A DNA stretch of 63,913 bases, the filler included, from Choristocarpus tenellus KU-1152 (taxonomy: Eukaryota > Protista > Phaeophyceae): assembly GCA_964200185.2 (NCBI GenBank). It is 9 parts of 9 records of this genome, joined end to end, with 100 filler letters (N's around TTAATTAATTAA, not from the genome) between each part and the next. Parts side by side here need not be neighbours in the genome. Positions count along the whole stretch, not along the records: positions 29,941 to 43,285 come from CAXNAD020001514.1; 8 more parts are not named here. One strand, given 5' to 3'. A program made the position numbers and the translations under genes. Shown in pieces: positions 1-43,285 of this stretch; position 1 is the stretch's first letter; each line of letters opens with the position of its first letter. Under the pieces are notes generated by a model. That model searched no databases. It saw nothing but the letters and a program-made list of their open reading frames with translations, and had not been told where the DNA came from.

Positions 1-258
1 ACAAAAAGAAAAAAAAAAAGGGGGGGGGGGGGGGGGTCGGCGTCCGTTTTTCACCCTTTTTTCGATTTTCACTTTATTGATGTGATTTGGTCGCACGTGT
101 CGGATTTGAAATGTCATAAAAAAAAAAAAAGTTTGGCCGAAACGGACGCCCCCCCCCCAACCACCACCCCCCCCCCCCCCCCCCATCCCCCCCCCCCCCC
201 TATTTGCTTTTTTCAACAAACTTACATACCATTAAAAAAAAAAAAGGGGGGGCGGGGA

Positions 259-29650: not shown

Positions 29651-31824
29651 GTGTTACTGAAGGCACATTGTGTACTGTGGCAGTTTTGTGTAGATGGATG
29701 TACGATATGTAGTGTTACAAAACTACAGTGAAGAAATCTAATGAAGAGCAGACCCAAAGTATAGTGGGGGGAGGGGGGGGGGTCTACACCAGGGTGCCCA
29801 TTTGGACCATAACCAGGAAGAGTGCACTTACATTATCCATNNNNNNNNNNNNNNNNNNNNNNNNNNNNNNNNNNNNNNNNNNNNTTAATTAATTAANNNN
29901 NNNNNNNNNNNNNNNNNNNNNNNNNNNNNNNNNNNNNNNNGTATATTTTGACCATAGTGCCCTAGAGGGGGGGAGGGTCAGGCGTCCATTCGCGACCATT
30001 GCAATCTTGCAGTGATTTTGATGTCATTTAAGTGAACACATCAGATGTAAGGGCAATTTCCTTCTTCTGGATGGACCTTCCTTCTCCAACCCCCTGCCTG
30101 GACCAAATCCGAAGGAAATCACCCCCAAAACGGCATCAGACTAGAGTGATTTGCAATAACTCATCAAGACCCGAATGTGGTCTAAACACTTTCCCTCTAG
30201 GATACCATGAACGTTGCAAAATGTTCAAAATGGCCTTCAAACTCAAAAGGGCCAAAATTACCCCTCCTCAGGTACGGTTTACCTCAAAGCGTGGAGCAGC
30301 TTCAAGCATTCCAGTAATATCTCAACGAGGTGGAAACTCCCGGGGTAGTGGGTGCATAAAAGAGGATATGGGGGGCTGCACTGAAGGGGGTGACAGAGTT
30401 ACACTAACTACAACAAACTGTGTCACTGCGGTATAAGTTGTAATGTTTACACCTATTATACATTTTGGATTGGAAACTCCCAGGTAGGGGGGTCTGACAG
30501 ACTCTTCATATTACTTCCCTAATTTTAGACTGCCTTCAAGGTACTGGTCTAGGTGGGCAACTTTATCGCCTAATTTAGTTTGAAGTAGTAATGTGTGATG
30601 CAATGACATTAGATCATCAACAAAGAATGTATGCCTACTCTGTTTTGTATCATTACTTTTTGTTCTATTTCTGTCTCTTCCCTCTCAACAGTTCTGTCCA
30701 AATATCACCAGACATACAATACTACATAGTAATATACTGGAGTATTGACAAATTAGAGGTCGAATTGAACAAAATGGCAAGAGGCAAGACATGTACCAAA
30801 GTTTGAAAAACGTTAAACGAAAACATGTTTTTTCCCCCAACTTAAGGTAACTGACTGGTTATACCTTTTCTGATTGGCTTTGTTGGTCTAGCATGATAGC
30901 TTCAAGTCCGCCAGCTTCATTTGATTTGGATCACAATTGTCGTATCTCTCCAATACATAAAAGTGCCACTAATGTGCTTTCTACCCTCCCCACTTCTATA
31001 CTTTTGAGCAGCACCTGTTTTCAGGTCTGTTTTGCTCATACAATAGGTCATTGTGCTGTGTCTTCGGGGACTCGATAGTCTTGGCTTGGGATATGTGGGG
31101 AATTCATTAGTGGTACAGTATGGTGTCACTGTATGACTCACCTTTCAATTTATTCATATGACTGCAACCTGGGCACCTAACTTCTCAACGCAGAAGCTAG
31201 CTTGCCCAGCAGCTATGCCCAATCTTTGCAGGAGTTATATTTTTGATACCAATACCCATAAATGGAACTTATGAACTAAATCAACCACTGGAAAAACGAG
31301 CTGATGCTTATGAAAATTCTTCCACATCAAGCATTACATTTTTTCTATTGACACATTGTTTCCTGGCGTCACTGCACACAAAGAGTTTATATTTTATTTT
31401 TCCAATGGATAGCAGACCAGTCGCCGAGAGATCCATGTGATTAATATATGCATAAGTAGCGGAATTCCATCCAGTGAATAATTTTTTTATGTTGAATTCA
31501 TTTTGTGGTGGTACATATCATCACGTACATATTAATACAGAACTCAGAAACTAACCTATTGGTAGATCCCTATAGCTGCATATAGCCGGGCTCGCCAACC
31601 CCCGATCAACAACACTTCCAAAAACAAAGCTCTGAAGTTACCTACATACAAATACGATATGAGTGAGAACTTATCAAATAGCAATCATCAGGTCCAAGCC
31701 CCCACATCCTCAGCGCACGGGAGCAAAGTCCGAGGTAAACCCTATCTATTGGCTATTCACAACAGAAGATTCAACCATCTCCAGAGAGTCCAGGATAGTT
31801 GTAGTTGCTCCTTTTGGTGCTAGT

Positions 31825-32172
31825 TCACAACAAAATGCATCTATCCTTTTTTTTTTCTGAGGTGCCAGTGCGTTCAACCTCCTCCCGAAGAATCTTTACC
31901 ATGTGCGTGTAGTACTCCACGTGCCGCGGGTCCCCTGGAAACGCCCTGGCTTCCCTTTCGTAGTACACGGCACCTGCTTCAAGGTCGCCATAAATCTGCC
32001 TTACTTCCAAGCGGAAGGCAACATATTTTTCGTCTGCTTCTTCTGACTGTCCAGCCACCTCTAAGGCCACTCCATACATGTAGTGCCGGATTGGATCAGT
32101 AGTGTTGCGAAACTCTTCGTGCCTCGTTGTGGCATCCTTGATGTCCTCGAACGTCCACAACCTTTGGTCCAT
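31825..32172 (-). CDS. Hypothetical protein (exon), divergent from the Pol I gene
   Basis: 115-aa CpG-rich ORF with protein-like, helical composition, head-to-head with the Pol I start about 380 bp away. The 5' structure is not resolved. Confidence 0.45.
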   Translation of the reverse strand: MDQRLWTFEDIKDATTRHEEFRNTTDPIRHYMYGVALEVAGQSEEADEKYVAFRLEVRQIYGDLEAGAVYYEREARAFPGDPRHVEYYTHMVKILREEVERTGTSEKKKDRCILL

Positions 32173-32554
32173 GCAAGAACATCAGCTCTGGTGGAGAAGG
32201 GGGCATTAACGAATTGTATGCAGAGAACGACTTCCTTTCGTAACTCACCATTATCCCTTAGTTCTTCCTCCAGTTTCATTTAAGGAAAAAATAAACTAAG
32301 ACGACATCATCCGACAAATATGTTGGAAGGCGTTCGTCATTTTGGGTTTGATATTATAATCATTACCATCAATAACACCCCCCTTCCAGATTATCTCACC
32401 ACAACCATCAAAATAGGACCCGGGCTGGTTGCCCAGGGTCGCGCATGATTGGATCGATCTCAACACTCTATCATTAGAGATAGTTTAGCGCTAACTTTGA
32501 GCAGGCTGGATGGTGTAGTAGCCACGCTTTCCGATCAAGTGAAGTAGGAAAACC

Positions 32555-35500
32555 ATGTCACACGACAGGACAGTGATCCGGCATGCAGTACATGAAATCG
32601 AGTTCGGTTTCTTTTCCGACGAGGACATCAGAGGACTCAGCGTGAAGCAAATCACCTCTCCGGTGACGTTCGACTCGCTCAACAATCCTTTACCGGGGTA
32701 AGTCTTGGTAGTGCCCCCCGAACCTTCCTCGTTATCCTCATATCATGTATGCTTGGCACGCAGTGAGCCATGTGGCAGACTTTTCGTAAACTCACATGAT
32801 TATCATACATCGATTCCACAGTCGAGATATATCACGAGCTGAGATCATCCCACGCAAGAATGACCTCAAACTTGCCCGAGTCATTTGGGGCGATGGTGAC
32901 CACATATTCCTTGAGGACTTCCATTAGTACAGGATCAAGGAATTAATTAATCCTGTTTTGTCTTAAAGGCTGGTGACATTTGCGCGCATTATCAATTTGC
33001 TTCTTTAACCTGAAATGTAGTATAATCTCTTAACCTACACATCCCCGATGTTCGTTTCCCTCAGCGGTCTCTACGATCCAGCTTTAGGTCCCACTGAGTA
33101 TCACACAATGTGCGAGACATGTGGACAGGACCAGAAAGAATGTCCAGGTCATATGGGACATGTTGAGGTGAGATTTGGAAAGCACTTCGAAAGTGCTGTT
33201 ACCTCGTCATAATATTGCTTCGTATTACTTTCTCTCCTCACCAATGTATTTTTTTATATCTCGAAAAACGATTGAAGATAAACTTTTTGTGGTCAGGCCC
33301 CAGCCCAAGTTGATACGCACAACAGTATTTCATGCTATTTTGCAAGGGATATCATGTTGAATGACCTGTCATAAATCTTGTGTACACCAAGTCCCCTATC
33401 TGCTTCCTGGTCTACAAAACTTCCTCCAACCTCATTTCCTTCACTTCTTGAATCAGTTAGCTGTGGATGTCTACCATCCCCTTCTCTTTGGTGCCCTGTA
33501 CAAGCTCCTTCGCTCAAAGTGCTTCAGTTGTCACCACCTTCGCCTCTCCAAGGCCAAGGCCCGTTTAGCATCTGTCAAGGTTAGTAAAAATGATACCTTC
33601 CAGGACGTAACAATTATGTCGAGCAGGGTACAGCGGTCTTATGCTAGTGGCCATACTTATCCTAAGAGCATGTTAAAGTGGGAAATACACACTTCATTAT
33701 GTTAGGACAGATAGTCAATATATGTTAATACAGGCGAAAATATGTCAATCTGTAATGTGTAGATACCCTTCTGAGATGACATTTTGTGGAATATGATGAA
33801 ATCGTCCATGATTCCTAATCCTTGACGCACTTGTGCACCAACACACGTCACAGATGATGCTCGTTGATGCGGGTAGAGGCCATGAGGCGAGATCCCTGGA
33901 TGAGGACCTCTTGGGCTACTTGAAAGGAGCGGAATCTGATGCTGATGGAACGGTTGCCAATCCAGTTGCTGCACATACGTATGTCCTTTTAACACCCCCT
34001 GCCTCCCCCATTGTGTGAGCCTTTCTGGAACTGATGCTTTGGTTGTTGCTGTTAGAAAAAGCTAATCTTTTACTTTAAAAGTGTTAGGAAAAGAGTGGAG
34101 GGGTAAGGGGTAAAAAATTCACAATATGATGTGCTATGTATACCAATGCATATTTTAAGAAAGGATGAATTAGTCCATGTGCCTATAGTAGTTTGTCTTC
34201 AACCATTATAGTCAGTAATGGGTGTGTGTAAGACTGTAGCGTTCTCACTCTATGTTTTCCTAGTTGATAAGTTGGTCAACCTAATTTTTTGTGGAATTGG
34301 AAAGTCGATTAAAATCTGTGCCAACCACGACTGGATTCTCTAATCCTAAACTTGGCCTGTCCAAGGTACACTTAAATTTCTTCAGCAATGTCACTGATGG
34401 TTAATGCAGGTTCAGGGAGCATCTTCTTGGCAAGATTGAGCAGGAGCTATATAGTGCACCTAAGTCAGTGTGGTGTGGTGGGCATGATCGAACACTGAGG
34501 TGCAATAAACAAGTAACCTTACACTTGGTCCATTGCTTGTCTTTTTCACCTGCTACACACCCTCCCCCACTTTGCATTGTTCCCTGAGGCTTTGTCAAAA
34601 TGGTTTTGTAGAGTAATTAAATATGATGAGATGTTAATCAGTTGACCCAGACATGAAGCTCTTAGCATCAAGTGGTTGCATAAATAGTGTAAGCCATCTC
34701 TCAGTTACTCCATCAACCAAGATACTTTGTCACCAATCTGTTCTCTCCTTGGTAGACGTGAACTGGCTGAGGGGTTGATCAAGGTAATAGGTGGTATCAA
34801 AAGGTGTGAGAATTGTGGAGCTCATTCTCCTCGAATCCGCAAGGATGGCAGTGACAAGTTCTTTCAGGTAGGAAGTATTTCGACATTCAATTCAACATAT
34901 TTGCTCTTGTCACCTTTCTGTATCACTTTCACAAGGTCATTTTTATCACTCAGAGTGAGGGCAATGTGTATCTTTTTCCTTAGGTGCCAATCCAATAAAT
35001 TACTTTCCGAAAAGGTGACTGGACTGTTTTATTGTACATTTTTGCCAATTGCGTATAGTGATCAGAATTTCTTGTATTGCTTGAAATGAAGTAATGTATC
35101 TCTTTGTCGAGCTATCAAACCAATGGATTACTTTCTTAGAGAGTGACTATGGAGATTTTTTTTTGTACAGTTTGTAAGTTTTGGTGCTGAGTGTACTAAG
35201 TAAGGAAATTTCAGACAAATCATAGTTGATAAAGCTGCAAATTTGTTCAGAGTAACTGGGTATCACAAGTAGGAAAAATTTATGTGTACATATTGTATTT
35301 TGCATATATTGAGAGTAAATGTGCTTCTTTTTTATCACTTCAATGGGTTTTGATGTTAATCCTCCAGAAAGTATATTTCTAACTTACGGCTAAATATATT
35401 TTGCAATGACGAGCCATGAACTGTGTCATACGTCTGAGATGTGTTTCTATGATGTCACAATTTTCATGCTGCCTTCCTTCTGAGCAAAATATAGACAGCT

Positions 35501-38500
35501 ACAAATAATTGTTAGAGTTGCTTTGACTTTGCTAGTAGCTTCTGTATTTATTCCACAAACCTTTTGTAGGCTGTGATGTTGGTAAGTTCATCTCCCATAA
35601 CATACATTGTGTCATGTCTTCTTTCAAGTTCTCTTTTTTCTGATGTTTATGTTGATTTGTTTTGCCAGGTCCCACTTTTGGAAAGATACAGGTCAGCGAA
35701 CAGGGCTTACAATGTTCCCATTACCTCTGCTGTGCATGTGAGAAGAGTGGAAATGGATTGAAGTTTTAAGTTAAAGAGTGAGGAACCTGTAATTGCTGAA
35801 TAGGAGTATAATTTGTGCATTCACAATTAATCACTGTAATTCACTTGAGTATTATCATTGATGACCAAACTATACTTGTCTAGTTCAAAAAACATCCTGT
35901 TGTTGCCGTCGAAAGCGTTGTTGCACGCGGTTTAAACTGTGACCACCAGGGATTGATGGTACATCTTCAAACAAGATCTATACCTGTTCATTCACTTTTT
36001 TTAATAGTTTGGAGAGTCAGGTATTAAAACTTGATAAAAAATGTGAAGGGTTGACTAATTATCTCTTCAGATACATATTTTGTTGTCGACTTTTTTTTTC
36101 AAATTATATAACTGTGGATAATGTGCTGCTGCTCATACTGTAATTGCTGCTCAGGAACAGTATGCTATGGCAAGTGGTGTTGATACTGAAGTTCCTGAAT
36201 GTGATGATTCTGATCCAGAGATGGATGTGGATGAAGAAAATGGGGAGGATCTTGAAAGAGGTGGTGAGGCTGGAGAGGGTATTAATGACGCCAGTGGTGC
36301 TGAGCTTAATAGCAAAGGAGGCAAGGCAGCGCACAAGTTTATGCCGCCAATTGAGGTATGTGAGTGTGTCAAATAAATGAGTGAGAATGCTGTGGACAGC
36401 ACTACTCATGTAGCAGTTTGTTGAGTAAGTTGTTATTTCCCACTTCTCTTCCCCTTACCATAATGCATGCCACCTATAACCTACCTTGATTATTCACAAT
36501 GTGGATGCTTCAGGTATTTTGGAGAGGATGGTGGTTGGAGAAAAATGTGATGGTCTTCAACGAAAAACTGACCACCTTGCTGTGATTTCATGGTTATGAA
36601 TCGTTACGTTCATTTTTTAGTTGGCCCTGTCTGACCACTCCACCTCTCATTCTTTGTTGGTATCCCTGATTATCCAACATCCATTGAGAATAGGTTGAAA
36701 TGCAGATGAAGCTCTTGTGGGCGAAGGAAGAAACACTGCTAAGCCTCTTATTCGGTTCAGCCTTTGCAGGAAAGCTATCAGGAAAAGCTGGGGAGGTTCC
36801 TGGTCCCATTGGAGGTGGGGCTGGCAAGATGGGCTACCGCCTGTTCTTTTTGCGTGCTCTTGGGGTCCCTCCCCCTCGTTTCCGACCGCCAATGACTATG
36901 GGGGACTTTGTAGCAGAGCACCCACAAAATATTTATCTGTCGAAGGTAAGCAGATAAAGACTTATTAAGGTCCTCCTGAGTTAGGTGATCTTCTTGTGAG
37001 CATATTTTTAAAATATTAAAAAAGTTGAAAGCAGTAGGAACTGGCTGCACCAATTAGATACGTAAGTTCCTATCATTTATAGGTATGGGATGATTTCTTT
37101 TTGTGCTGGATACTGTACATATTTGTATGTAGGGTACACTTTAAGAACCAACATTATGATCTATTGACCCACACAACCAGTTATATTATTGCTTATTAAC
37201 TTGTATCAGGGTTAAGAAGGGTGAGACCTCATCACCAGATGAGACTGAACAAACCTTTCTTTCAGTATTAACTCAGAATACCACATCGTTTCTGTGTCCA
37301 TTCAATGTGACTTTGTATCTTATTCTCGCAATTGGTTGAGTATCATCTTGAAATTCAAAGTAGAATGAAGTAGGATGAATCATGATGAATACAGTTCAAT
37401 TGATTAGAGTTTCTGAGAAACTGAATGCAATTCGTTACCTGATGAGAAAGCTCTTGTCTCTTTGGATGTGCCTACTTTGACAATTGAAGGTTAGTCATTT
37501 GTGCATTCTGTCTTGTGAAAATATTTGTAATAGTTTTTTGTAAGTGGATGCTACGAAAGGTACCTTTTTCCCGATCCTCAATTTTATCTTTAATTTACTT
37601 GAAGATAACTATGGCTTAGCAGTCCCTTCAACTCTGTACAATATTCCATGCATTTTTGTGCTCCTGAGAGTGAAGATATCTTTAGTTATCAGCGAAAACA
37701 AACAGATTTTTCTATAGCCAGCGTTAGTTCTCTATGGTATAGATATTTTATTGTTTAAATAGTGGGTGATATCTGTTGCTAATTCTTAAGCCACATTTTT
37801 ACTTGATGTATCATCTCCTGTATCAGCTAGTTTTAACTTGGCATGTGGTAAGGGTCTAGCCTACATACAATTTGACTCTCATTTTGCGTTGTTTTGCCTT
37901 ATATTTCTTGTTTGTTTTGGTCCCATTGTTCTCTGATCTTTAAAGATACTCAGTCTCAACGAAAAAATGAAAAATGCTGAGGAGCTGCATGGAAATGAAC
38001 TTTCTATGTGAGTAGGTGGAGAGTTTTTTTTAGTCCATACTCTACAGTCTCATTTAAAACTATCAAGCTGTTCTGTGGTGCACTGAAAGAGAAGGGTTGG
38101 TAGTTAATGTTTAGGTATTTCTCTAGAACTGTCACATATTTGTTATTACGGTGGTACTATGTACAGACTCCACATTTGTGAAAAAATGCATGATATCAAA
38201 GTACAGATAATGTTAGAGTATGGTGAGTGTTGCTCCTGTCACTTGTTCATGGTAGTCCTGCATGAATATTTTCTGCTTGATCTTTTTGACAGGGCAATTT
38301 CCTGAGTCTACTACTTCTATATACCTCCTGCAGCTGCATATTCTTGTTAGAATGGAGGAACTTGATTAAGTGAATCTGCAAAAGTCTTGAAGTGCATGTA
38401 CTTGTATTTAGCTCAAGTATGTAGATTTCCTCAAACAGAAAAGTGCGGTATACTTAATCAAATATCTTGAGTAACAGATTTTGGATGAATGGTGAACCGA

Positions 38501-41500
38501 GAACTGAAGAGTTTTGCAATGACGAGCCATGAACTGTGTCAATTGACCGAGAAGACCTTCTATGATGATGCAATTATCATGCTGCCTTCCTTCTGAGCAA
38601 AACTCACCTATTCGTGTCCGGTTTACATATCCACAAATGTGATGACTTACAAACACTATTCTATTGTCTTGTACATCGCTCTTTGTATGTGGAGTAAGTT
38701 TGCATTCTGGGTCCAACTTATTGTGCATAGACCAAGTACAGTTACTCGTTTCAACACTTAAAAAATTGAATGTCACTGTATACAATTGAATTGGCCTCCA
38801 GCTTGTTGATCATTAAGAATTGGTAAGGTTTGAAGGGGGGGAAAGAGATAATGTGTTATGTGTATGTACTACGTATGTTGAGGGGTAGGGAAATACTTGA
38901 AGTTTGTAGTTGTACTCGTTTGTTGTATGTGACAAGAGGGTTACTGATAATAAATATATCTCATTCAATACTGTACAGGGTGCTGTCTACATGGGTGGAA
39001 CTCCAGACAACAGTAAATTGCTACATGGATAGCAGCAAGGACCCAAAAGGAACTAATGATACTCCTCCAGGTCTTAGACAGGTGTGAACGTTTTTTTTGG
39101 TTACATCCTCATTAGTTCAAAGATCTTATGATAGTAGCTATCTCCTATTCTTAATTCTAGTTTGTGCTAGTAGTGAGGCTATATATTGATTAATCAATAA
39201 GTTGAACCTAGTTGATCTAGATCAGTATGGTAGGGGTGCTTGTGCTACACTGCACAAATGAACATGGTACAACAGTTTTTTTGTAACTCAAACTGCAGAT
39301 TGCTTATTCTAATGACAGCCTATCTCTATGCAGGTGCTTGAAAAGAAGGAGGGTCTGTTCCGGAAGCACATGATGGGCAAACGTGTTAACTTCTGTTGTC
39401 GATCGGTTATCTCCCCCGATCCGTACTTGGGCACGACAGAGATTGGTATACCATTGAGGTTTGCGAAGACGCTAACCTTTGCCCAGCCAGTGGTATCGTG
39501 GAATGCGGCGGAGATGAGGGGCTTGGTGGAAGCAGGAGCTATACAGTACCCTGGTAAGGCAGGAGGGGGTGCGGTACTCTAGGATGTGTGGATAGGATCA
39601 AGTTATGTATAATACAATGTCTATAATTGTGGTGTCCCATGCATTTTTGCTAAAAATAGTGCTTCAAATTGGTGGCTTGTCACATGTAGAATGGAGCAGA
39701 AAATAAACCTTCCTTTGTCTTGTGTATCTACAGAAGGGTGCATCAGTGCTAGGTCTTCGTTCTGTTAAACAAATCGTTGTAATTAAAGTATGCAACTGGA
39801 GGGTCAATTGTTTAACACAACAATACACATAATTATTCAATGACTATTTGTTTTACAAGTTGTTGGGTAAACATTGCTGAGCTTGGTACTTCAGTCTGCC
39901 CGATGATGAGTCTTTAAAAGCCACCGAGAACCCTTTTGATTTTATGTGGACAAAGACAAGACACCTGTGTTTCTGAGGGTTCTGACCAAGTCAGTTTAAT
40001 TTCATGAGTGAGTCATAGTATGCTTGTTTGTCTGATTTACAACATGGATTTTGTATGAGGATAGCACAATGATGTGAACTTCTAGAAAGTTTCTAGGAGG
40101 GCATTGGCCCTAACCGTTTCCCATTAAAATGGTAGTGTAGGTCATGTTATCAAACATAACCATGCCAGAGCTTTTTTTATCAAACAATTTTCCTGTTTCC
40201 ATGGTTTTTGTGTATCTCAGGGGTCAGCTCTCAAGGGTCAGCCTTAAGCTACTCGCTTCTTTTTGTGACGCCAGTACCTTATGTTCTCACTCCTGGAGCA
40301 TGTGTTGTTCCCTTCCTAAATGTTACATGTGTTTATTTTGGATATGTTCACACTGTGTTCATGTACCCGTGAAATATACTTCTGATTGTGAAAGGTGCTA
40401 ACTATGTTGAGGATGCACAGGGGAGACTCATAGACCTCTCAAGGTTGAGTGATATACGCAGGAGAGGGGTCGCTGCACGGCTCTTGTCAAAGCCTGGTCA
40501 AAAGGTATGACAATATTGTAGCCATCATTCAACCCTGAGCACAGCTCTCCAAAACCGTTGATGTTGGTAAGAGTTTTCTTCTGTTGTTAGTGTTTCATAT
40601 CCATAATTTGAGTCAAGGAAGTAAGAAATAAGTGGTGAGGTGAATGAAGGGCATGATTGTACTAGAAACTCGTTTAACACAATACTGATCTGCCAATCCC
40701 AATTTGTTCTTGAATCTGTAGTTTGTCCTCAAAATCCCTGCAGGTAATTCAGTTGTTTGTCAGGTCACTTCAAGCCACACATTTGAATTTATTCCTAGAG
40801 GTGCTTGTGCTCACCTATCCTATTATTTCAGCATCTACGTTACAATTTATCCACTGCTTAAATGGTCAGCGTCAAACTTTTGTCCTTCATACCTCCTATA
40901 ACAAGGTTTGGCGCCATCTCCATGATGGAGACTGCATGCTGGTGAATCGACAACCTACCCTACACAAGCCAGGCATCATGGCGCACCGTGTGCGGGTGTT
41001 CCGCAACCCAGAATATCAAACAATTCGCATGCACTATGCCAACTGCAATACCTACAATGCAGACTTTGATGGAGACGAGATCAATTGTCATCTTCCACAG
41101 GTATGTTCATAGTGTAGTGTATGTATGGTCTTTGATGTCATACGTAAGGAAAAATATATTTCTGATGTGTTACACTTGATACCATTTTGGAGACACTGCA
41201 GTTCTGTTGTTGAACTTTGTAATTTGTTCACCTTTGTACTATATGTGGTCAAGCACTGCACTCTGCCCTTTTACATGTAGTTTTTGATACATCTTTTTCA
41301 TTGCTCTCTGCCCCATCACGCTTGCCTCCTTTTCAGAATGAGGTAGCACGAGCAGAAGCAAATCTAATTGCTTTTACTGATCAGCAGTACATTGTGCCAA
41401 CAAATGGTAAGCCATTACGAGGTCTTATCCAGGATCATGTGGATGCTGGTGTGAAGCTCTGCTCTAAGGTAAACTAAAAACCCATCGCTGCATCCTGTCC

Positions 41501-43285
41501 TGTACATGTCGTTTTTATATTGTCTCCATAGTCTAGTGCAGCTCCCTTCAGAGTGAAATTCTTACTCTTAATACTTCTCCACCCTCGATTGATGCTGCGA
41601 TAAGGACTCCTTCCTGACTAAAGGTGAGTACCAGCAGCTTGTGTTCCAGGCTCTTGCAGGACTTCCAGGGTTGGAGATAGTTCATCCCCAAGAAAGGATA
41701 CATTCTATGCCACCGGCAGTGCTTCGCCCTAGAGAGCTATGGACTGGAAAACAGGTGATATATAAGCAGATTGTTCCATTGATTCTTAATTTTTGGAGTT
41801 TTAAAAATACAATCTCCATATTCTTTTCTCATTAAGTAGAAGACAAGTGGTGAGTATTTTGTGAAGTGTATAAGAGGCAGTTGGAATCAGTGATGCTACT
41901 TGTGAGTAAATTTGTGAAATTGCCTTTGGAATTCAGCTCTCCCCCTAAATCGTTTAGTTGTGTGGGATCTGATCATTTTCTTTCCCTTGAGTTAATTTGT
42001 CTAGAGAACATGGTACCTGATGCGTTTTCAACCCTACAAAATATTCTGTTTATTTCATTTGATACCAGGTAATGTCAACAATCCTCCTACACTTGACCTT
42101 AGGTCTGCCTCAGCTAAACTTGGACAGTAAGGCGAAGACACCATCTGTTGCCTTCGGTGATGACCAAGATGAGCACAAGGTATTTCGGTTTTTTCTTTGT
42201 TCATATTTTCTAATGTACAATTGTATCCACCACTCAACAATATTAATTCAGTAATGTCCTACCACTGTACTACTGTTAGCTTGAAAACTAATTCACTCCT
42301 ATGTTTCAATCTATATTTTCTATTACGCAGGTGCTGTTCAGAGAGGGTGAGTTGTTACGGGGTGTCCTTGACAAGGGAGCTTTTGGTTCCTCCACAGGGG
42401 GCATTGTTCATGCTGTGCAGGAGCTTTATGGTGCAACGGCTGCGGGAAAACTGTTGACGGTGAGTACTTGATCATGTCAAGAGGTTAGGTAGCTGAAAGC
42501 TGGGGTGTTAAATAAAGCTTCTGGATATCATTGATTCTTCAATGTGACATCATGACAAACAGTTATCTATGATAGCATATGTTCGTGTCAGCCTTACCCC
42601 AATGTAACCATTTTGGAAATGTCAAGTAGTGTTAATACATATGTAATCGAACTTTCTTGCATTATGTCCTGTGATGTTTGCAACTGGGTATCGTGTGTGT
42701 ATGCAAGAGAAGGCCCTTGGTCGTGTGCTGACCATCTACATGCAGTCATCCGGTCACACCTGCGGCATTGAAGATCTCACACTTAATGCAAAGGCAGAGG
42801 AAGAAAGAGCTAGTATTATAAAAAAGGTATGTTTGATACTGTGCCAGCTGTTACATGACTTCTGTGCATCATAGGTAGAACTGTTGGCATGTATACTGAA
42901 TTAAATTGATTCTGTGCAATGATGGAGAAACTGTCCGTAGTCTGATATATCTGCATTAGGTTGAAGAATGAAGCAAAATGTAGACTTCTTCTCCTGCTGT
43001 CATGACGATCTGTGACTGGGTGAACAATCTCTGAGCATAGTTTACCGAACAACAATATCACATACTATCTTATTTTACTATGACTTCAAACATGTTTCTA
43101 TGCCTGAAAACTGGGTAATTTCAGAAGACTTCAACCCTCCCTTGTCCCCAATCAAATATATTTTTTTCCAGTCTCAAGGTAAAGGTCAGCGAGCCATGCA
43201 AGAGCTACTGGCTGAGCAGGATGGTCAAGATGAGGCAGCAGCTGCAGCAGGGTCTAGTGGTGGGGGAGGTCGAAGTAGTGGGGGG
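32555..43285 (+). CDS. POLR1A: DNA-directed RNA polymerase I largest subunit (RPA190/NRPA1), 5' part, 20 exons, truncated at contig end
   Basis: Phase-consistent GT-AG exon chain: 32555-32697, 33065-33167, 33457-33579, 33854-33978, 34410-34499, 34756-34867, 35669-35737, 36155-36355, 36694-36945, 37946-38007, 38979-39081, 39334-39553, 40395-40504, 40906-41100, 41337-41468, 41605-41754, 42069-42179, 42331-42459, 42713-42826, 43172-43285. Motifs: [19 protein letters not shown] (Zn site), [23 protein letters not shown], catalytic [20 protein letters not shown] and [19 protein letters not shown] and HYANC point to Pol I rather than Pol II or III. Confidence 0.96.
35395..35493 (+). ncRNA. Intronic box C/D snoRNA, snR52/SNORD83-like, predicted guide for the 18S Am420-equivalent (copy 1, Pol I gene intron 6)
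   Basis: 10-bp terminal stem TATATTTTGC/GCAAAATATA. Box C ATGACGA (35406), D' CTGA (35434), C' ATGATGT (35449), box D CTGA (35480). The guide TGCTGCCTTCCTT is complementary to conserved 18S AAGGAAGGCAGCA. Confidence 0.9.
38509..38605 (+). ncRNA. Intronic box C/D snoRNA, snR52/SNORD83-like (copy 2, Pol I gene intron 10)
   Basis: 9-bp terminal stem GAGTTTTGC/GCAAAACTC. Box C ATGACGA (38519), D' CCGA (38547), C' ATGATGA (38562), D CTGA (38593). It has the same 13-nt 18S guide as copy 1, and the outer stem differs from copy 1 while still pairing. Confidence 0.9.
39898..39980 (+). ncRNA. Intronic box C/D snoRNA, predicted LSU rRNA guide just 3' of the P-loop (Pol I gene intron 12)
   Basis: Box C ATGATGA (39903), D' CCGA (39924), C'-like TTGATTT (39936), D CTGA (39973). 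Stem GCCC/GGGT, extended by CTTGGT/ACCAAG (39882/39985). The guide GACACCTGTGTT pairs with conserved LSU AACGCAGGUGUC with one G-U pair. Confidence 0.75.
42912..43040 (+). ncRNA. Intronic box C/D snoRNA, predicted guide for the LSU A-loop Um2921-equivalent (Pol I gene intron 19)
   Basis: Stem CTGTGC/GCATAG. Box C ATGATGG (42919), D' CTGA (42942), C' ATGACGA (43002), D CTGA (43031). The guide TGGGTGAACAATC (43017-43029) is the perfect complement of LSU GAUUGUUCACCCA. The D+5 position falls on the U before GUU. Confidence 0.88.

Follow-up and report, generated by a model that had tools for sequence, protein, structure and literature searches.

Candidate box C/D guide RNAs in introns of the RNA polymerase I largest-subunit gene of the brown alga Choristocarpus tenellus

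Four introns of RPA1, the gene for the largest (catalytic) subunit of RNA polymerase I (Pol I), in the brown alga Choristocarpus tenellus KU-1152 (GenBank assembly GCA_964200185.2) very probably each encode a functional box C/D small nucleolar RNA (snoRNA), which would guide methylation of ribosomal RNA (rRNA) and be co-produced with the host mRNA. The gene was analyzed within a 63,913-nucleotide (nt) stretch of DNA, referred to here as the window, in which nine parts of the assembly are joined end to end and along which all positions are counted. It lies in the piece at positions 29941-43285 (record CAXNAD020001514.1), which is intron-rich, has a G+C content of approx. 40%, and truncates RPA1 at its end.

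Box C/D elements and their conservation

The elements, designated sno-A, sno-C, sno-D and sno-E, all lie on the sense strand, one per intron (Table 1). An original prediction, made from the sequence of the window, had placed four box C/D RNAs in introns 6, 10, 12 and 19; their coordinates, boxes, terminal stems and intron numbering match our exon model, and the antisense stretch of 12-13 nt that it described, ending at box D or one nucleotide before it, is present in each of the four. Box D reads CTGA in all four elements. The C box of sno-D is canonical (RUGAUGA), while those of sno-A and sno-C (TGACGA) and of sno-E (TGATGG) carry one mismatch each. The C′ and D′ motifs are plausible but degenerate, and their conservation between species is only partial. 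The longest element, sno-E, contains an internal hairpin (approx. 42962-42990) between D′ and C′. The first 30 nt and the last 25 nt of sno-A and sno-C are identical; on this comparison the two are paralogs, with one guide in common.

A crude scan for boxes and stems was by itself not decisive, as it cannot separate these elements from chance: it returned five matches on the plus strand and three on the minus strand, compared with a mean of 1.3 and a maximum of five in shuffled sequences. A relaxed version of the scan gave many false matches on both strands.

The question of chance was settled by comparison with other species. The RPA1 loci compared were those of Ectocarpus (L117), Sphacelaria (L118), Tribonema (L116), two other ochrophytes (L003 and L119), Triparma (L120) and a pelagophyte (L121), in which copies of each family were sought by short-word BLAST and direct reading. 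Covariance models were trained exclusively on the copies from other species, and the whole piece was then searched on both strands with the filters off. Model R1 (A family, six training copies) recovered sno-C (E=9.3e-14) and sno-A (E=2.4e-12), with the next-best match at E=0.38; model R2 (D family, eight training copies) recovered sno-D (E=3.5e-12; next-best E=0.54); and model R3 (E family, three training copies) recovered sno-E (E=6.1e-11; next-best E=0.26). As judged from these models, which we regard as decisive on this point, chance does not account for the elements.

Boxes and D guides do not vary in the alignments; the interior of the elements, the D′ regions and the flanking intron sequence diverge. 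The original prediction expected boxes and guides to be conserved in orthologous introns; their conservation was borne out in RPA1 introns of five other ochrophytes, in part at shifted intron positions. The terminal stems (4-6 bp) are 89-100% paired across species and show compensatory changes. One pair of the A family is U-A in the window and C-G elsewhere; in the E family, U-A, A-U and C-G alternate at one pair, and G-U and G-C at a second; and in the D family a C-G pair is replaced by U-A in L119.

Rfam was searched in E-value mode with the whole piece, and with sno-D and sno-E separately. The best matches of sno-A and sno-C, both full-length, were to snoU83 and snoU83B: sno-A scored 33.8 bits against snoU83 (gathering score 50) and 30 bits against snoU83B (gathering score 35), and sno-C scored 31.8 bits against the latter. 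Their match to snoZ13_snr52 reached 22 bits (gathering score 47). For sno-D and sno-E there were generic sub-threshold C/D matches only, and no specific family was matched by sno-E. By virtue of their common guide, sno-A and sno-C may be considered functional equivalents of snoU83, snoU83B and snoZ13_snr52, although their scores fall short of those that define Rfam membership.

Host gene and distribution of the families within it

Twenty plus-strand exons were modelled from open frames and GT..AG sites, and protein searches were performed exon by exon, with single exons as queries. The exons matched the Pfam families Rpb1_1, Rpb1_2 and Rpb1_3 (Rpb1 domains 1-3). When three exons were compared by phmmer with the proteins of PDB, Pol I subunits (RPA1/RPA190) were always the top four matches, among them S. 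pombe rpa1, human RPA1 and yeast RPA190. With exon 12, Pol I subunits were ahead of those of Pol II, Pol III and archaea by approx. eight orders of magnitude, and with exon 14, which encodes the active-site motif NADFDGDE, by approx. five or more; exon 9 is Pol I-specific, matching Pol I subunits alone. The nearest named proteins are RPA1 of Tribonema minus, Ectocarpus and Sphacelaria, with amino-acid identity over the aligned exons of approx. 70% to the Ectocarpus and Sphacelaria proteins and 65% to that of Tribonema. By these similarities the plus-strand gene encodes Pol I's largest subunit, and the host proposed in the original prediction was upheld.

Splicing was assessed with contigs from four public runs of one study (none recorded as RNA), aligned to positions 37300-43100. 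In run X1, this entire stretch lies inside one genomic contig of 14625 nt, which is probably the origin of the sequence analyzed here. In contrast, a 2774-nt contig of run X3 (depth 103) omits introns 10-18 at GT..AG sites, and at its loose ends exon 9 continues into exon 10 and exon 19 into exon 20. This confirmed that introns 9-19 are spliced out as modelled and that the host mRNA is made; introns 9, 10, 12 and 19 are therefore among those removed. Intron 6 is outside the aligned stretch, and the support for it comes from homology and splice motifs. The acceptor of exon 17 in the X3 contig is the AG at 42103, which is in frame and 33 nt downstream of the modelled site at 42070. The latter gives the best fit to the Tribonema protein alignment, and alternative 3′ splice sites may be used at this exon.

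Besides the window, copies of the A, D or E families were found in RPA1 introns of Ectocarpus, Sphacelaria, Tribonema, L003 and L119, and all copies in all species are in the sense orientation inside the gene. We mapped all loci onto the protein coordinates of Tribonema. The E family occurs in four species, namely that of the window, Ectocarpus, Sphacelaria and Tribonema, and each time in the same intron, after amino acid (aa) approx. 772. The interval from aa 208 to the next mapped exon holds the A family in the window, in Ectocarpus and, with two copies, in Sphacelaria; in L003 and L119 (two copies) the family lies one exon interval earlier, before aa approx. 170, so that its exon interval is kept in three of five species; the second A-family copy of the window, sno-C, is placed further downstream, in intron 10. 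The D family occupies different introns in different species, in one to four copies: after aa 466 in the window, after aa approx. 520 in L119 (two copies), after aa approx. 949 and 1060 in Ectocarpus, and 3′ of aa 960 in Sphacelaria (four tandem copies).

Six species therefore keep these families in RPA1, though the proteins are only 63-70% identical to that of the window. None of the families was found in the RPA1 genes of Triparma and the pelagophyte, which are nearly intronless, and no snoRNA copies were found in another RPA1-like locus (L002). The comparison of loci indicates that RPA1 is a multi-snoRNA host throughout this branch of the ochrophytes, with a content that varies and copies that move within the gene; their relocation seems to have been mostly confined to RPA1.

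Several other elements were noted in these loci. A further C/D family is present in RPA1 introns of Ectocarpus (two copies, L117 8268-8349 and 8964-9047) and Sphacelaria (five copies, L118 8614-10090); its D guide ends in ACCUGGUAAGCUU, the complement of which resembles an 18S stretch, and no member was seen in the visible part of the window. RPA1 of both these algae also contains a short snoRNA guiding at the 18S stretch GUUAAAAAGCUCG. The Tribonema gene carries two C/D copies (L116 8894-8995 and 13821-13922) with a guide for the 18S C six nucleotides 5′ of the sno-A site, which we take to be the U14 site, and a third C/D candidate (L116 5593-5669), whose terminal stem has 13 bp and for which no target was identified. 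In C. tenellus itself, a second sno-D-like copy was detected on a contig of 10358 nt (runs X1 and X2), aligned to window positions 39924-39978 with five differences. This copy has its own, perfectly complementary 6-bp terminal stem and may be located in the 3′ half of RPA1, beyond the piece.

Table 1. Coordinates of RPA1, its snoRNA-bearing introns and the box C/D elements in the window (each box is followed by its position)
Feature	Position	Strand	Location and size	Stem and boxes	Evidence or remark
sno-A, box C/D snoRNA	35398-35490	+	intron 6; 93 nt	stem TTTTGC/GCAAAA; C ATGACGA 35406; D′ CTGA 35434; C′ ATGATGT 35449; D CTGA 35480	model R1; Rfam sub-threshold
sno-C, box C/D snoRNA	38511-38603	+	intron 10; 93 nt	stem, C box and D guide as in sno-A; D′ CCGA 38547; D 38593	sno-A paralog; model R1
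sno-D, box C/D snoRNA	39895-39986	+	intron 12; 92 nt	stem GCCC/GGGT; C GATGATGA 39902; D′ CCGA 39924; C′ TGTGGA 39945; D 39973	model R2
sno-E, long box C/D snoRNA	42912-43040	+	intron 19; 129 nt	stem CTGTGC/GCATAG; C ATGATGG 42919; D′ 42942; C′ ATGACGA 43002; D 43031	model R3
sno-B, weak fifth candidate	37376-37447	+	intron 9; 72 nt	stem 3 bp; C ATGATGA 37382 (canonical); D′ CTGA 37413; D CTGA 37439	absent from earlier list; Rfam TtnuCD15 25.8 bits, E=7
RPA1, 5′ part	32555..43285	+	exons 1-20		Pfam, PDB phmmer, RPA1 alignments, spliced X3 contig
Intron 6	34868..35668	+	holds sno-A		GT..AG; flanking exons aligned to Tribonema RPA1 aa 161-208
Intron 9	36946..37945	+	holds candidate sno-B		X3 contig exon 9-exon 10 (loose end 37943)
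Intron 10	38008..38978	+	holds sno-C		GT..AG joint 38007>38979, X3 contig
Intron 12	39554..40394	+	holds sno-D		GT..AG joint 39552>40394, cut +1, X3 contig
Intron 19	42827..43171	+	holds sno-E		X3 loose end 42826 continues into exon 20 start

Predicted rRNA targets and known counterparts

Targets were sought in 112 eukaryotic metagenome ribosomal DNA (rDNA) loci, which were fetched with the universal ITS1 primer site, located at the 18S 3′ end. A duplex had to start at the second position from box D and to have a Watson-Crick pair at the fifth. The D guides of sno-A/sno-C and sno-E form 12-13 Watson-Crick pairs with conserved rRNA sites (target nucleotides are given below in brackets). The guides of sno-A (35466-35479) and sno-C (38579-38592) pair with 18S CCAAGG[A]AGGCAGCA, approx. 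1356 nt before the 18S 3′ end, the complement being present in 34 of these loci. From its position and context, we take this site to be A420 of yeast, an assignment that is consistent with the Rfam matches to U83 and snR52.

The guide of sno-E (43017-43030) pairs with large-subunit GGAU[U]GUUCACCC, which was found in at least 13 rDNA loci. The same target occurs in human 28S rRNA, 51 nt 3′ of a fully methylated CpG that we take to be m5C4447, and it would therefore be human U4498. The human 28S stretch containing both is printed in PMC12477938, and yeast m5C2870 and U2921 are likewise 51 nt apart, U2921 being the Um of the A loop, which corresponds to Um2552 of E. coli (PMC11121408). The predicted site of sno-E is thus the U of the large-subunit A loop (yeast U2921, human U4498, E. 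coli U2552), a loop that belongs to the peptidyl-transferase centre. In yeast, 18S-A420 and 25S-U2921 are both guided by snR52 (PMC9418376). The predicted sites of sno-A/sno-C and sno-E would accordingly coincide exactly with known conserved methylation sites.

The guide of sno-D (39960-39972) pairs with large-subunit AUAAC[A]CAGGUGUC, forming 12 pairs if the target base is A. This site is 275-276 nt 5′ of the A-loop U in typical loci and approx. 169 nt 5′ of the motif GGGAUAAC; it presumably belongs to domain V, approx. 25 nt 3′ of the P loop. We know of no yeast or human methylation at this position, and the target prediction would hold only if this lineage has A there. The identity of the guide in all eight sno-D copies, which come from three other species, argues for a real target.

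The original prediction had assigned the guides to 18S and peptidyl-transferase-centre sites. This stood for sno-A/sno-C (18S) and sno-E (A loop) and is conditional on the target A for sno-D, while the four guides correspond to three sites instead of four, since sno-A and sno-C have one guide in common. Two further complementarities were rejected. A 10-mer within sno-E (42992-43001), whose large-subunit complement (GACAGCAGGA) is present in 28 loci, lies 5′ of C′ and not of D′, is absent from the Ectocarpus and Sphacelaria copies, and is probably due to chance. A C/D-like motif on the minus strand (41687-41548), with a 10-mer complementary to 18S GUGAAAUUCU, is antisense over exon 16 and was also treated as chance.

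Among the closest known counterparts is snR52 of yeast, an independently transcribed snoRNA with the same two sites. In snR52, however, both guides are carried by one snoRNA, whereas in the alga they would be the D guides of separate intronic snoRNAs with one host. Human SNORD83A/B, the genes of which are in introns of RPL3 and not of a polymerase gene, have a D guide nearly identical to that of sno-A and sno-C and are their full-length best Rfam match, but the D′ region is only loosely similar and the scores are 30-34 bits, as against gathering scores of 35 and 50. It is well known that ribosome-biogenesis genes can carry box C/D snoRNAs in their introns. The multi-snoRNA hosts of animals include TAF1D (a subunit of a Pol I initiation factor), NOP56, NOP58 and nucleolin, and the literature mentions TAF1D in connection with snoRNA host genes; as in the alga, several sense snoRNAs lie one per intron in a gene for a protein of the rRNA pathway, but in the alga, an ochrophyte, it is the gene for Pol I's own catalytic subunit that acts as host. 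In yeast, snR52 is backed up by Spb1. Both this enzyme and RlmE (RrmJ/FtsJ) of E. coli methylate the A-loop U (Um2921 and Um2552, respectively; PMC11121408). These are stand-alone protein enzymes, unlike sno-E, which by prediction acts as an RNA guide, so that the same U is also modified by other means in bacteria and yeast.

Our literature search retrieved no description of snoRNAs in a Pol I subunit gene or of snoRNA hosts in brown algae, in agreement with the supposition of the original prediction that this host gene had not been described for these guides. The only mention of Ectocarpus snoRNAs that we found concerns loci predicted with CDseeker and ACAseeker (PMC4513859). What is new here is possibly the host gene, the lineage and one site that may be lineage-specific. 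The snoRNAs of stramenopile algae are almost undescribed, and the locus provides three well-supported guide families with predicted sites.

Production of the guides, alternative explanations and other features of the locus

The sense orientation and intronic position, taken together with the established pathway, suggest how the guides may be produced. The snoRNAs would be transcribed by Pol II as part of the RPA1 pre-mRNA, and the nascent intron would offer its terminal stem together with the C and D boxes as the assembly site of the C/D core proteins; splicing, debranching and exonuclease trimming would then reduce the intron to the snoRNA-protein particle. The stretch 5′ of box D would pair with pre-rRNA, in which, by the established D+5 rule, fibrillarin would 2′-O-methylate the nucleotide paired to the fifth guide position. 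The nucleotides so modified are predicted to be the equivalent of yeast A420 in 18S (sno-A/sno-C), the A-loop U (sno-E) and the domain V A approx. 275 nt 5′ of that U (sno-D). Because the guides are intronic, sense and in a spliced host, each RPA1 transcript would also yield guides for the rRNA that Pol I produces. The arrangement is an inherited one: the same families are found in RPA1 of brown algae, a xanthophyte and two other ochrophytes, though intron and copy number have shifted.

The intronic contigs of run X3 are suggestive at most. Low-depth contigs of run X3 (depth 2-5) at 37394-37615, 38534-38889 and 42837-43100 overlap sno-B, sno-C and sno-E. As a separate observation, run X4, which is labelled as a different organism (organism B), contains, beside its own G+C-rich RPA1 exon 12, pieces of 151-211 nt that are identical to the window (depth 2-6), at 37334-37484, 38529-38739, 42017-42363 and 42848-42998. 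There is overlap with sno-B, sno-C and sno-E in three of these five pieces, and all of this looks like carry-over between samples of one study.

Several observations weigh against the interpretation of the four elements as functional guides. Three of them have non-consensus C boxes (the same variants are, however, kept in other species), and all of the Rfam matches are under the gathering scores. The target scan used metagenome rDNA in place of the rRNA of the species itself, the target base of sno-D is A in only two of 13 metagenome rDNAs (L056 and L070) and G in the other 11, and the D′ guides of all four elements have no recurrent complement in the 112 rDNA loci. Finally, no intronic X3 contig covers sno-D, and contigs of this kind cannot show RNA ends. 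The variant C boxes, the unconserved D′ guides, the lack of an X3 contig for sno-D, and the 3-bp stem and missing target of sno-B could all be accommodated if some or all of the elements were decaying copies, or were conserved in the introns for some other function, control of host splicing for instance. We give this possibility very little credence, since the guides and boxes of sno-A, sno-C, sno-D and sno-E are invariant amid divergence, the stems covary, and two of the targets coincide exactly with known conserved methylation sites. Release of the snoRNAs independently of host splicing, from their own intronic promoters or by an endonuclease as in plant and yeast clusters, is improbable in our view, though somewhat less so. 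It would fit the tandem copies of Sphacelaria, which are 230-320 nt apart, and the distances of 131-410 nt between the snoRNA 3′ ends and the 3′ splice sites, as splicing-dependent snoRNAs of animals are typically 70-80 nt from this site, but every copy in every species is in the sense orientation and inside the gene, and in the window there is one per intron.

Functional intronic guides do not in themselves explain why RPA1 is their host. Coupling would be physical in any case, as one transcript gives both products, and it may or may not be a selected regulatory design. There is about an even chance that the snoRNAs are real and their residence in RPA1 has no regulatory meaning, the gene being merely an adequate, intron-rich and steadily expressed carrier in this lineage, reached by constrained drift among broadly expressed genes and their introns. 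Hoeppner and Poole found snoRNAs to change hosts readily across eukaryotes, with broad expression as the chief condition (PMC3511168), and drift is also favoured by the different introns of the D family, the earlier exon interval of the A family in L003 and L119, the copy numbers of one to four, the further sno-D-like copy on another contig of the same alga, and the absence of all these families from the nearly intronless genes of Triparma and the pelagophyte. Set against this are the persistence of the families in RPA1 of six species with such divergent proteins, the constant intron of the E family in four of them, and the apparent restriction of movement largely to the gene. Shifts between introns thus fit drift, and persistence in one gene fits either selection or a strong bias towards local movement. 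That RPA1 is a selected, long-term dedicated host, with the supply of guides tied stoichiometrically to Pol I synthesis, seems doubtful to us. If true, it would provide an exception to the view that snoRNA locations are subject to constrained drift alone, with guides that include the one for the universally conserved A-loop Um having been kept through intron turnover, duplication and relocation across the brown-alga/xanthophyte branch of the ochrophytes. The families shared by this gene of six species differ in copy number and partly in intron, and their relationship to the host, which has endured through several algal classes, makes the locus a compact natural test of selected co-expression versus drift.

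The fifth candidate, sno-B, is less secure than the other four. It shares its exon interval (P0151 aa 366-392) and short build, though not its guides, with the GUUAAAAAGCUCG-guiding snoRNA of Ectocarpus and Sphacelaria, and neither of its guides has a recurrent rRNA complement in the 112 metagenome rDNA loci. We rate its chance of being a functional snoRNA as somewhat below even; it may instead be a re-targeted or decaying copy.

A tRNA scan found no tRNA genes. Upstream of RPA1, at a distance of approx. 400 nt from its start, there is a divergent open reading frame (ORF) of 115 aa on the minus strand (31825-32172), which belongs to no Pfam family. A block within it (32004-32163) is 72-74% identical to the equivalently placed sequences upstream of the Ectocarpus and Sphacelaria RPA1 genes, and the ORF looks like a conserved head-to-head neighbour gene of RPA1. 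Intron 11 contains a 99-nt stretch with internal palindromes (39132-39230), of which an approx. 94% identical paralog is present on other contigs. Its word depth is 1191 in X3, compared with 34 in X1, and it may be a mobile-element fragment that is part of a highly expressed transcript.

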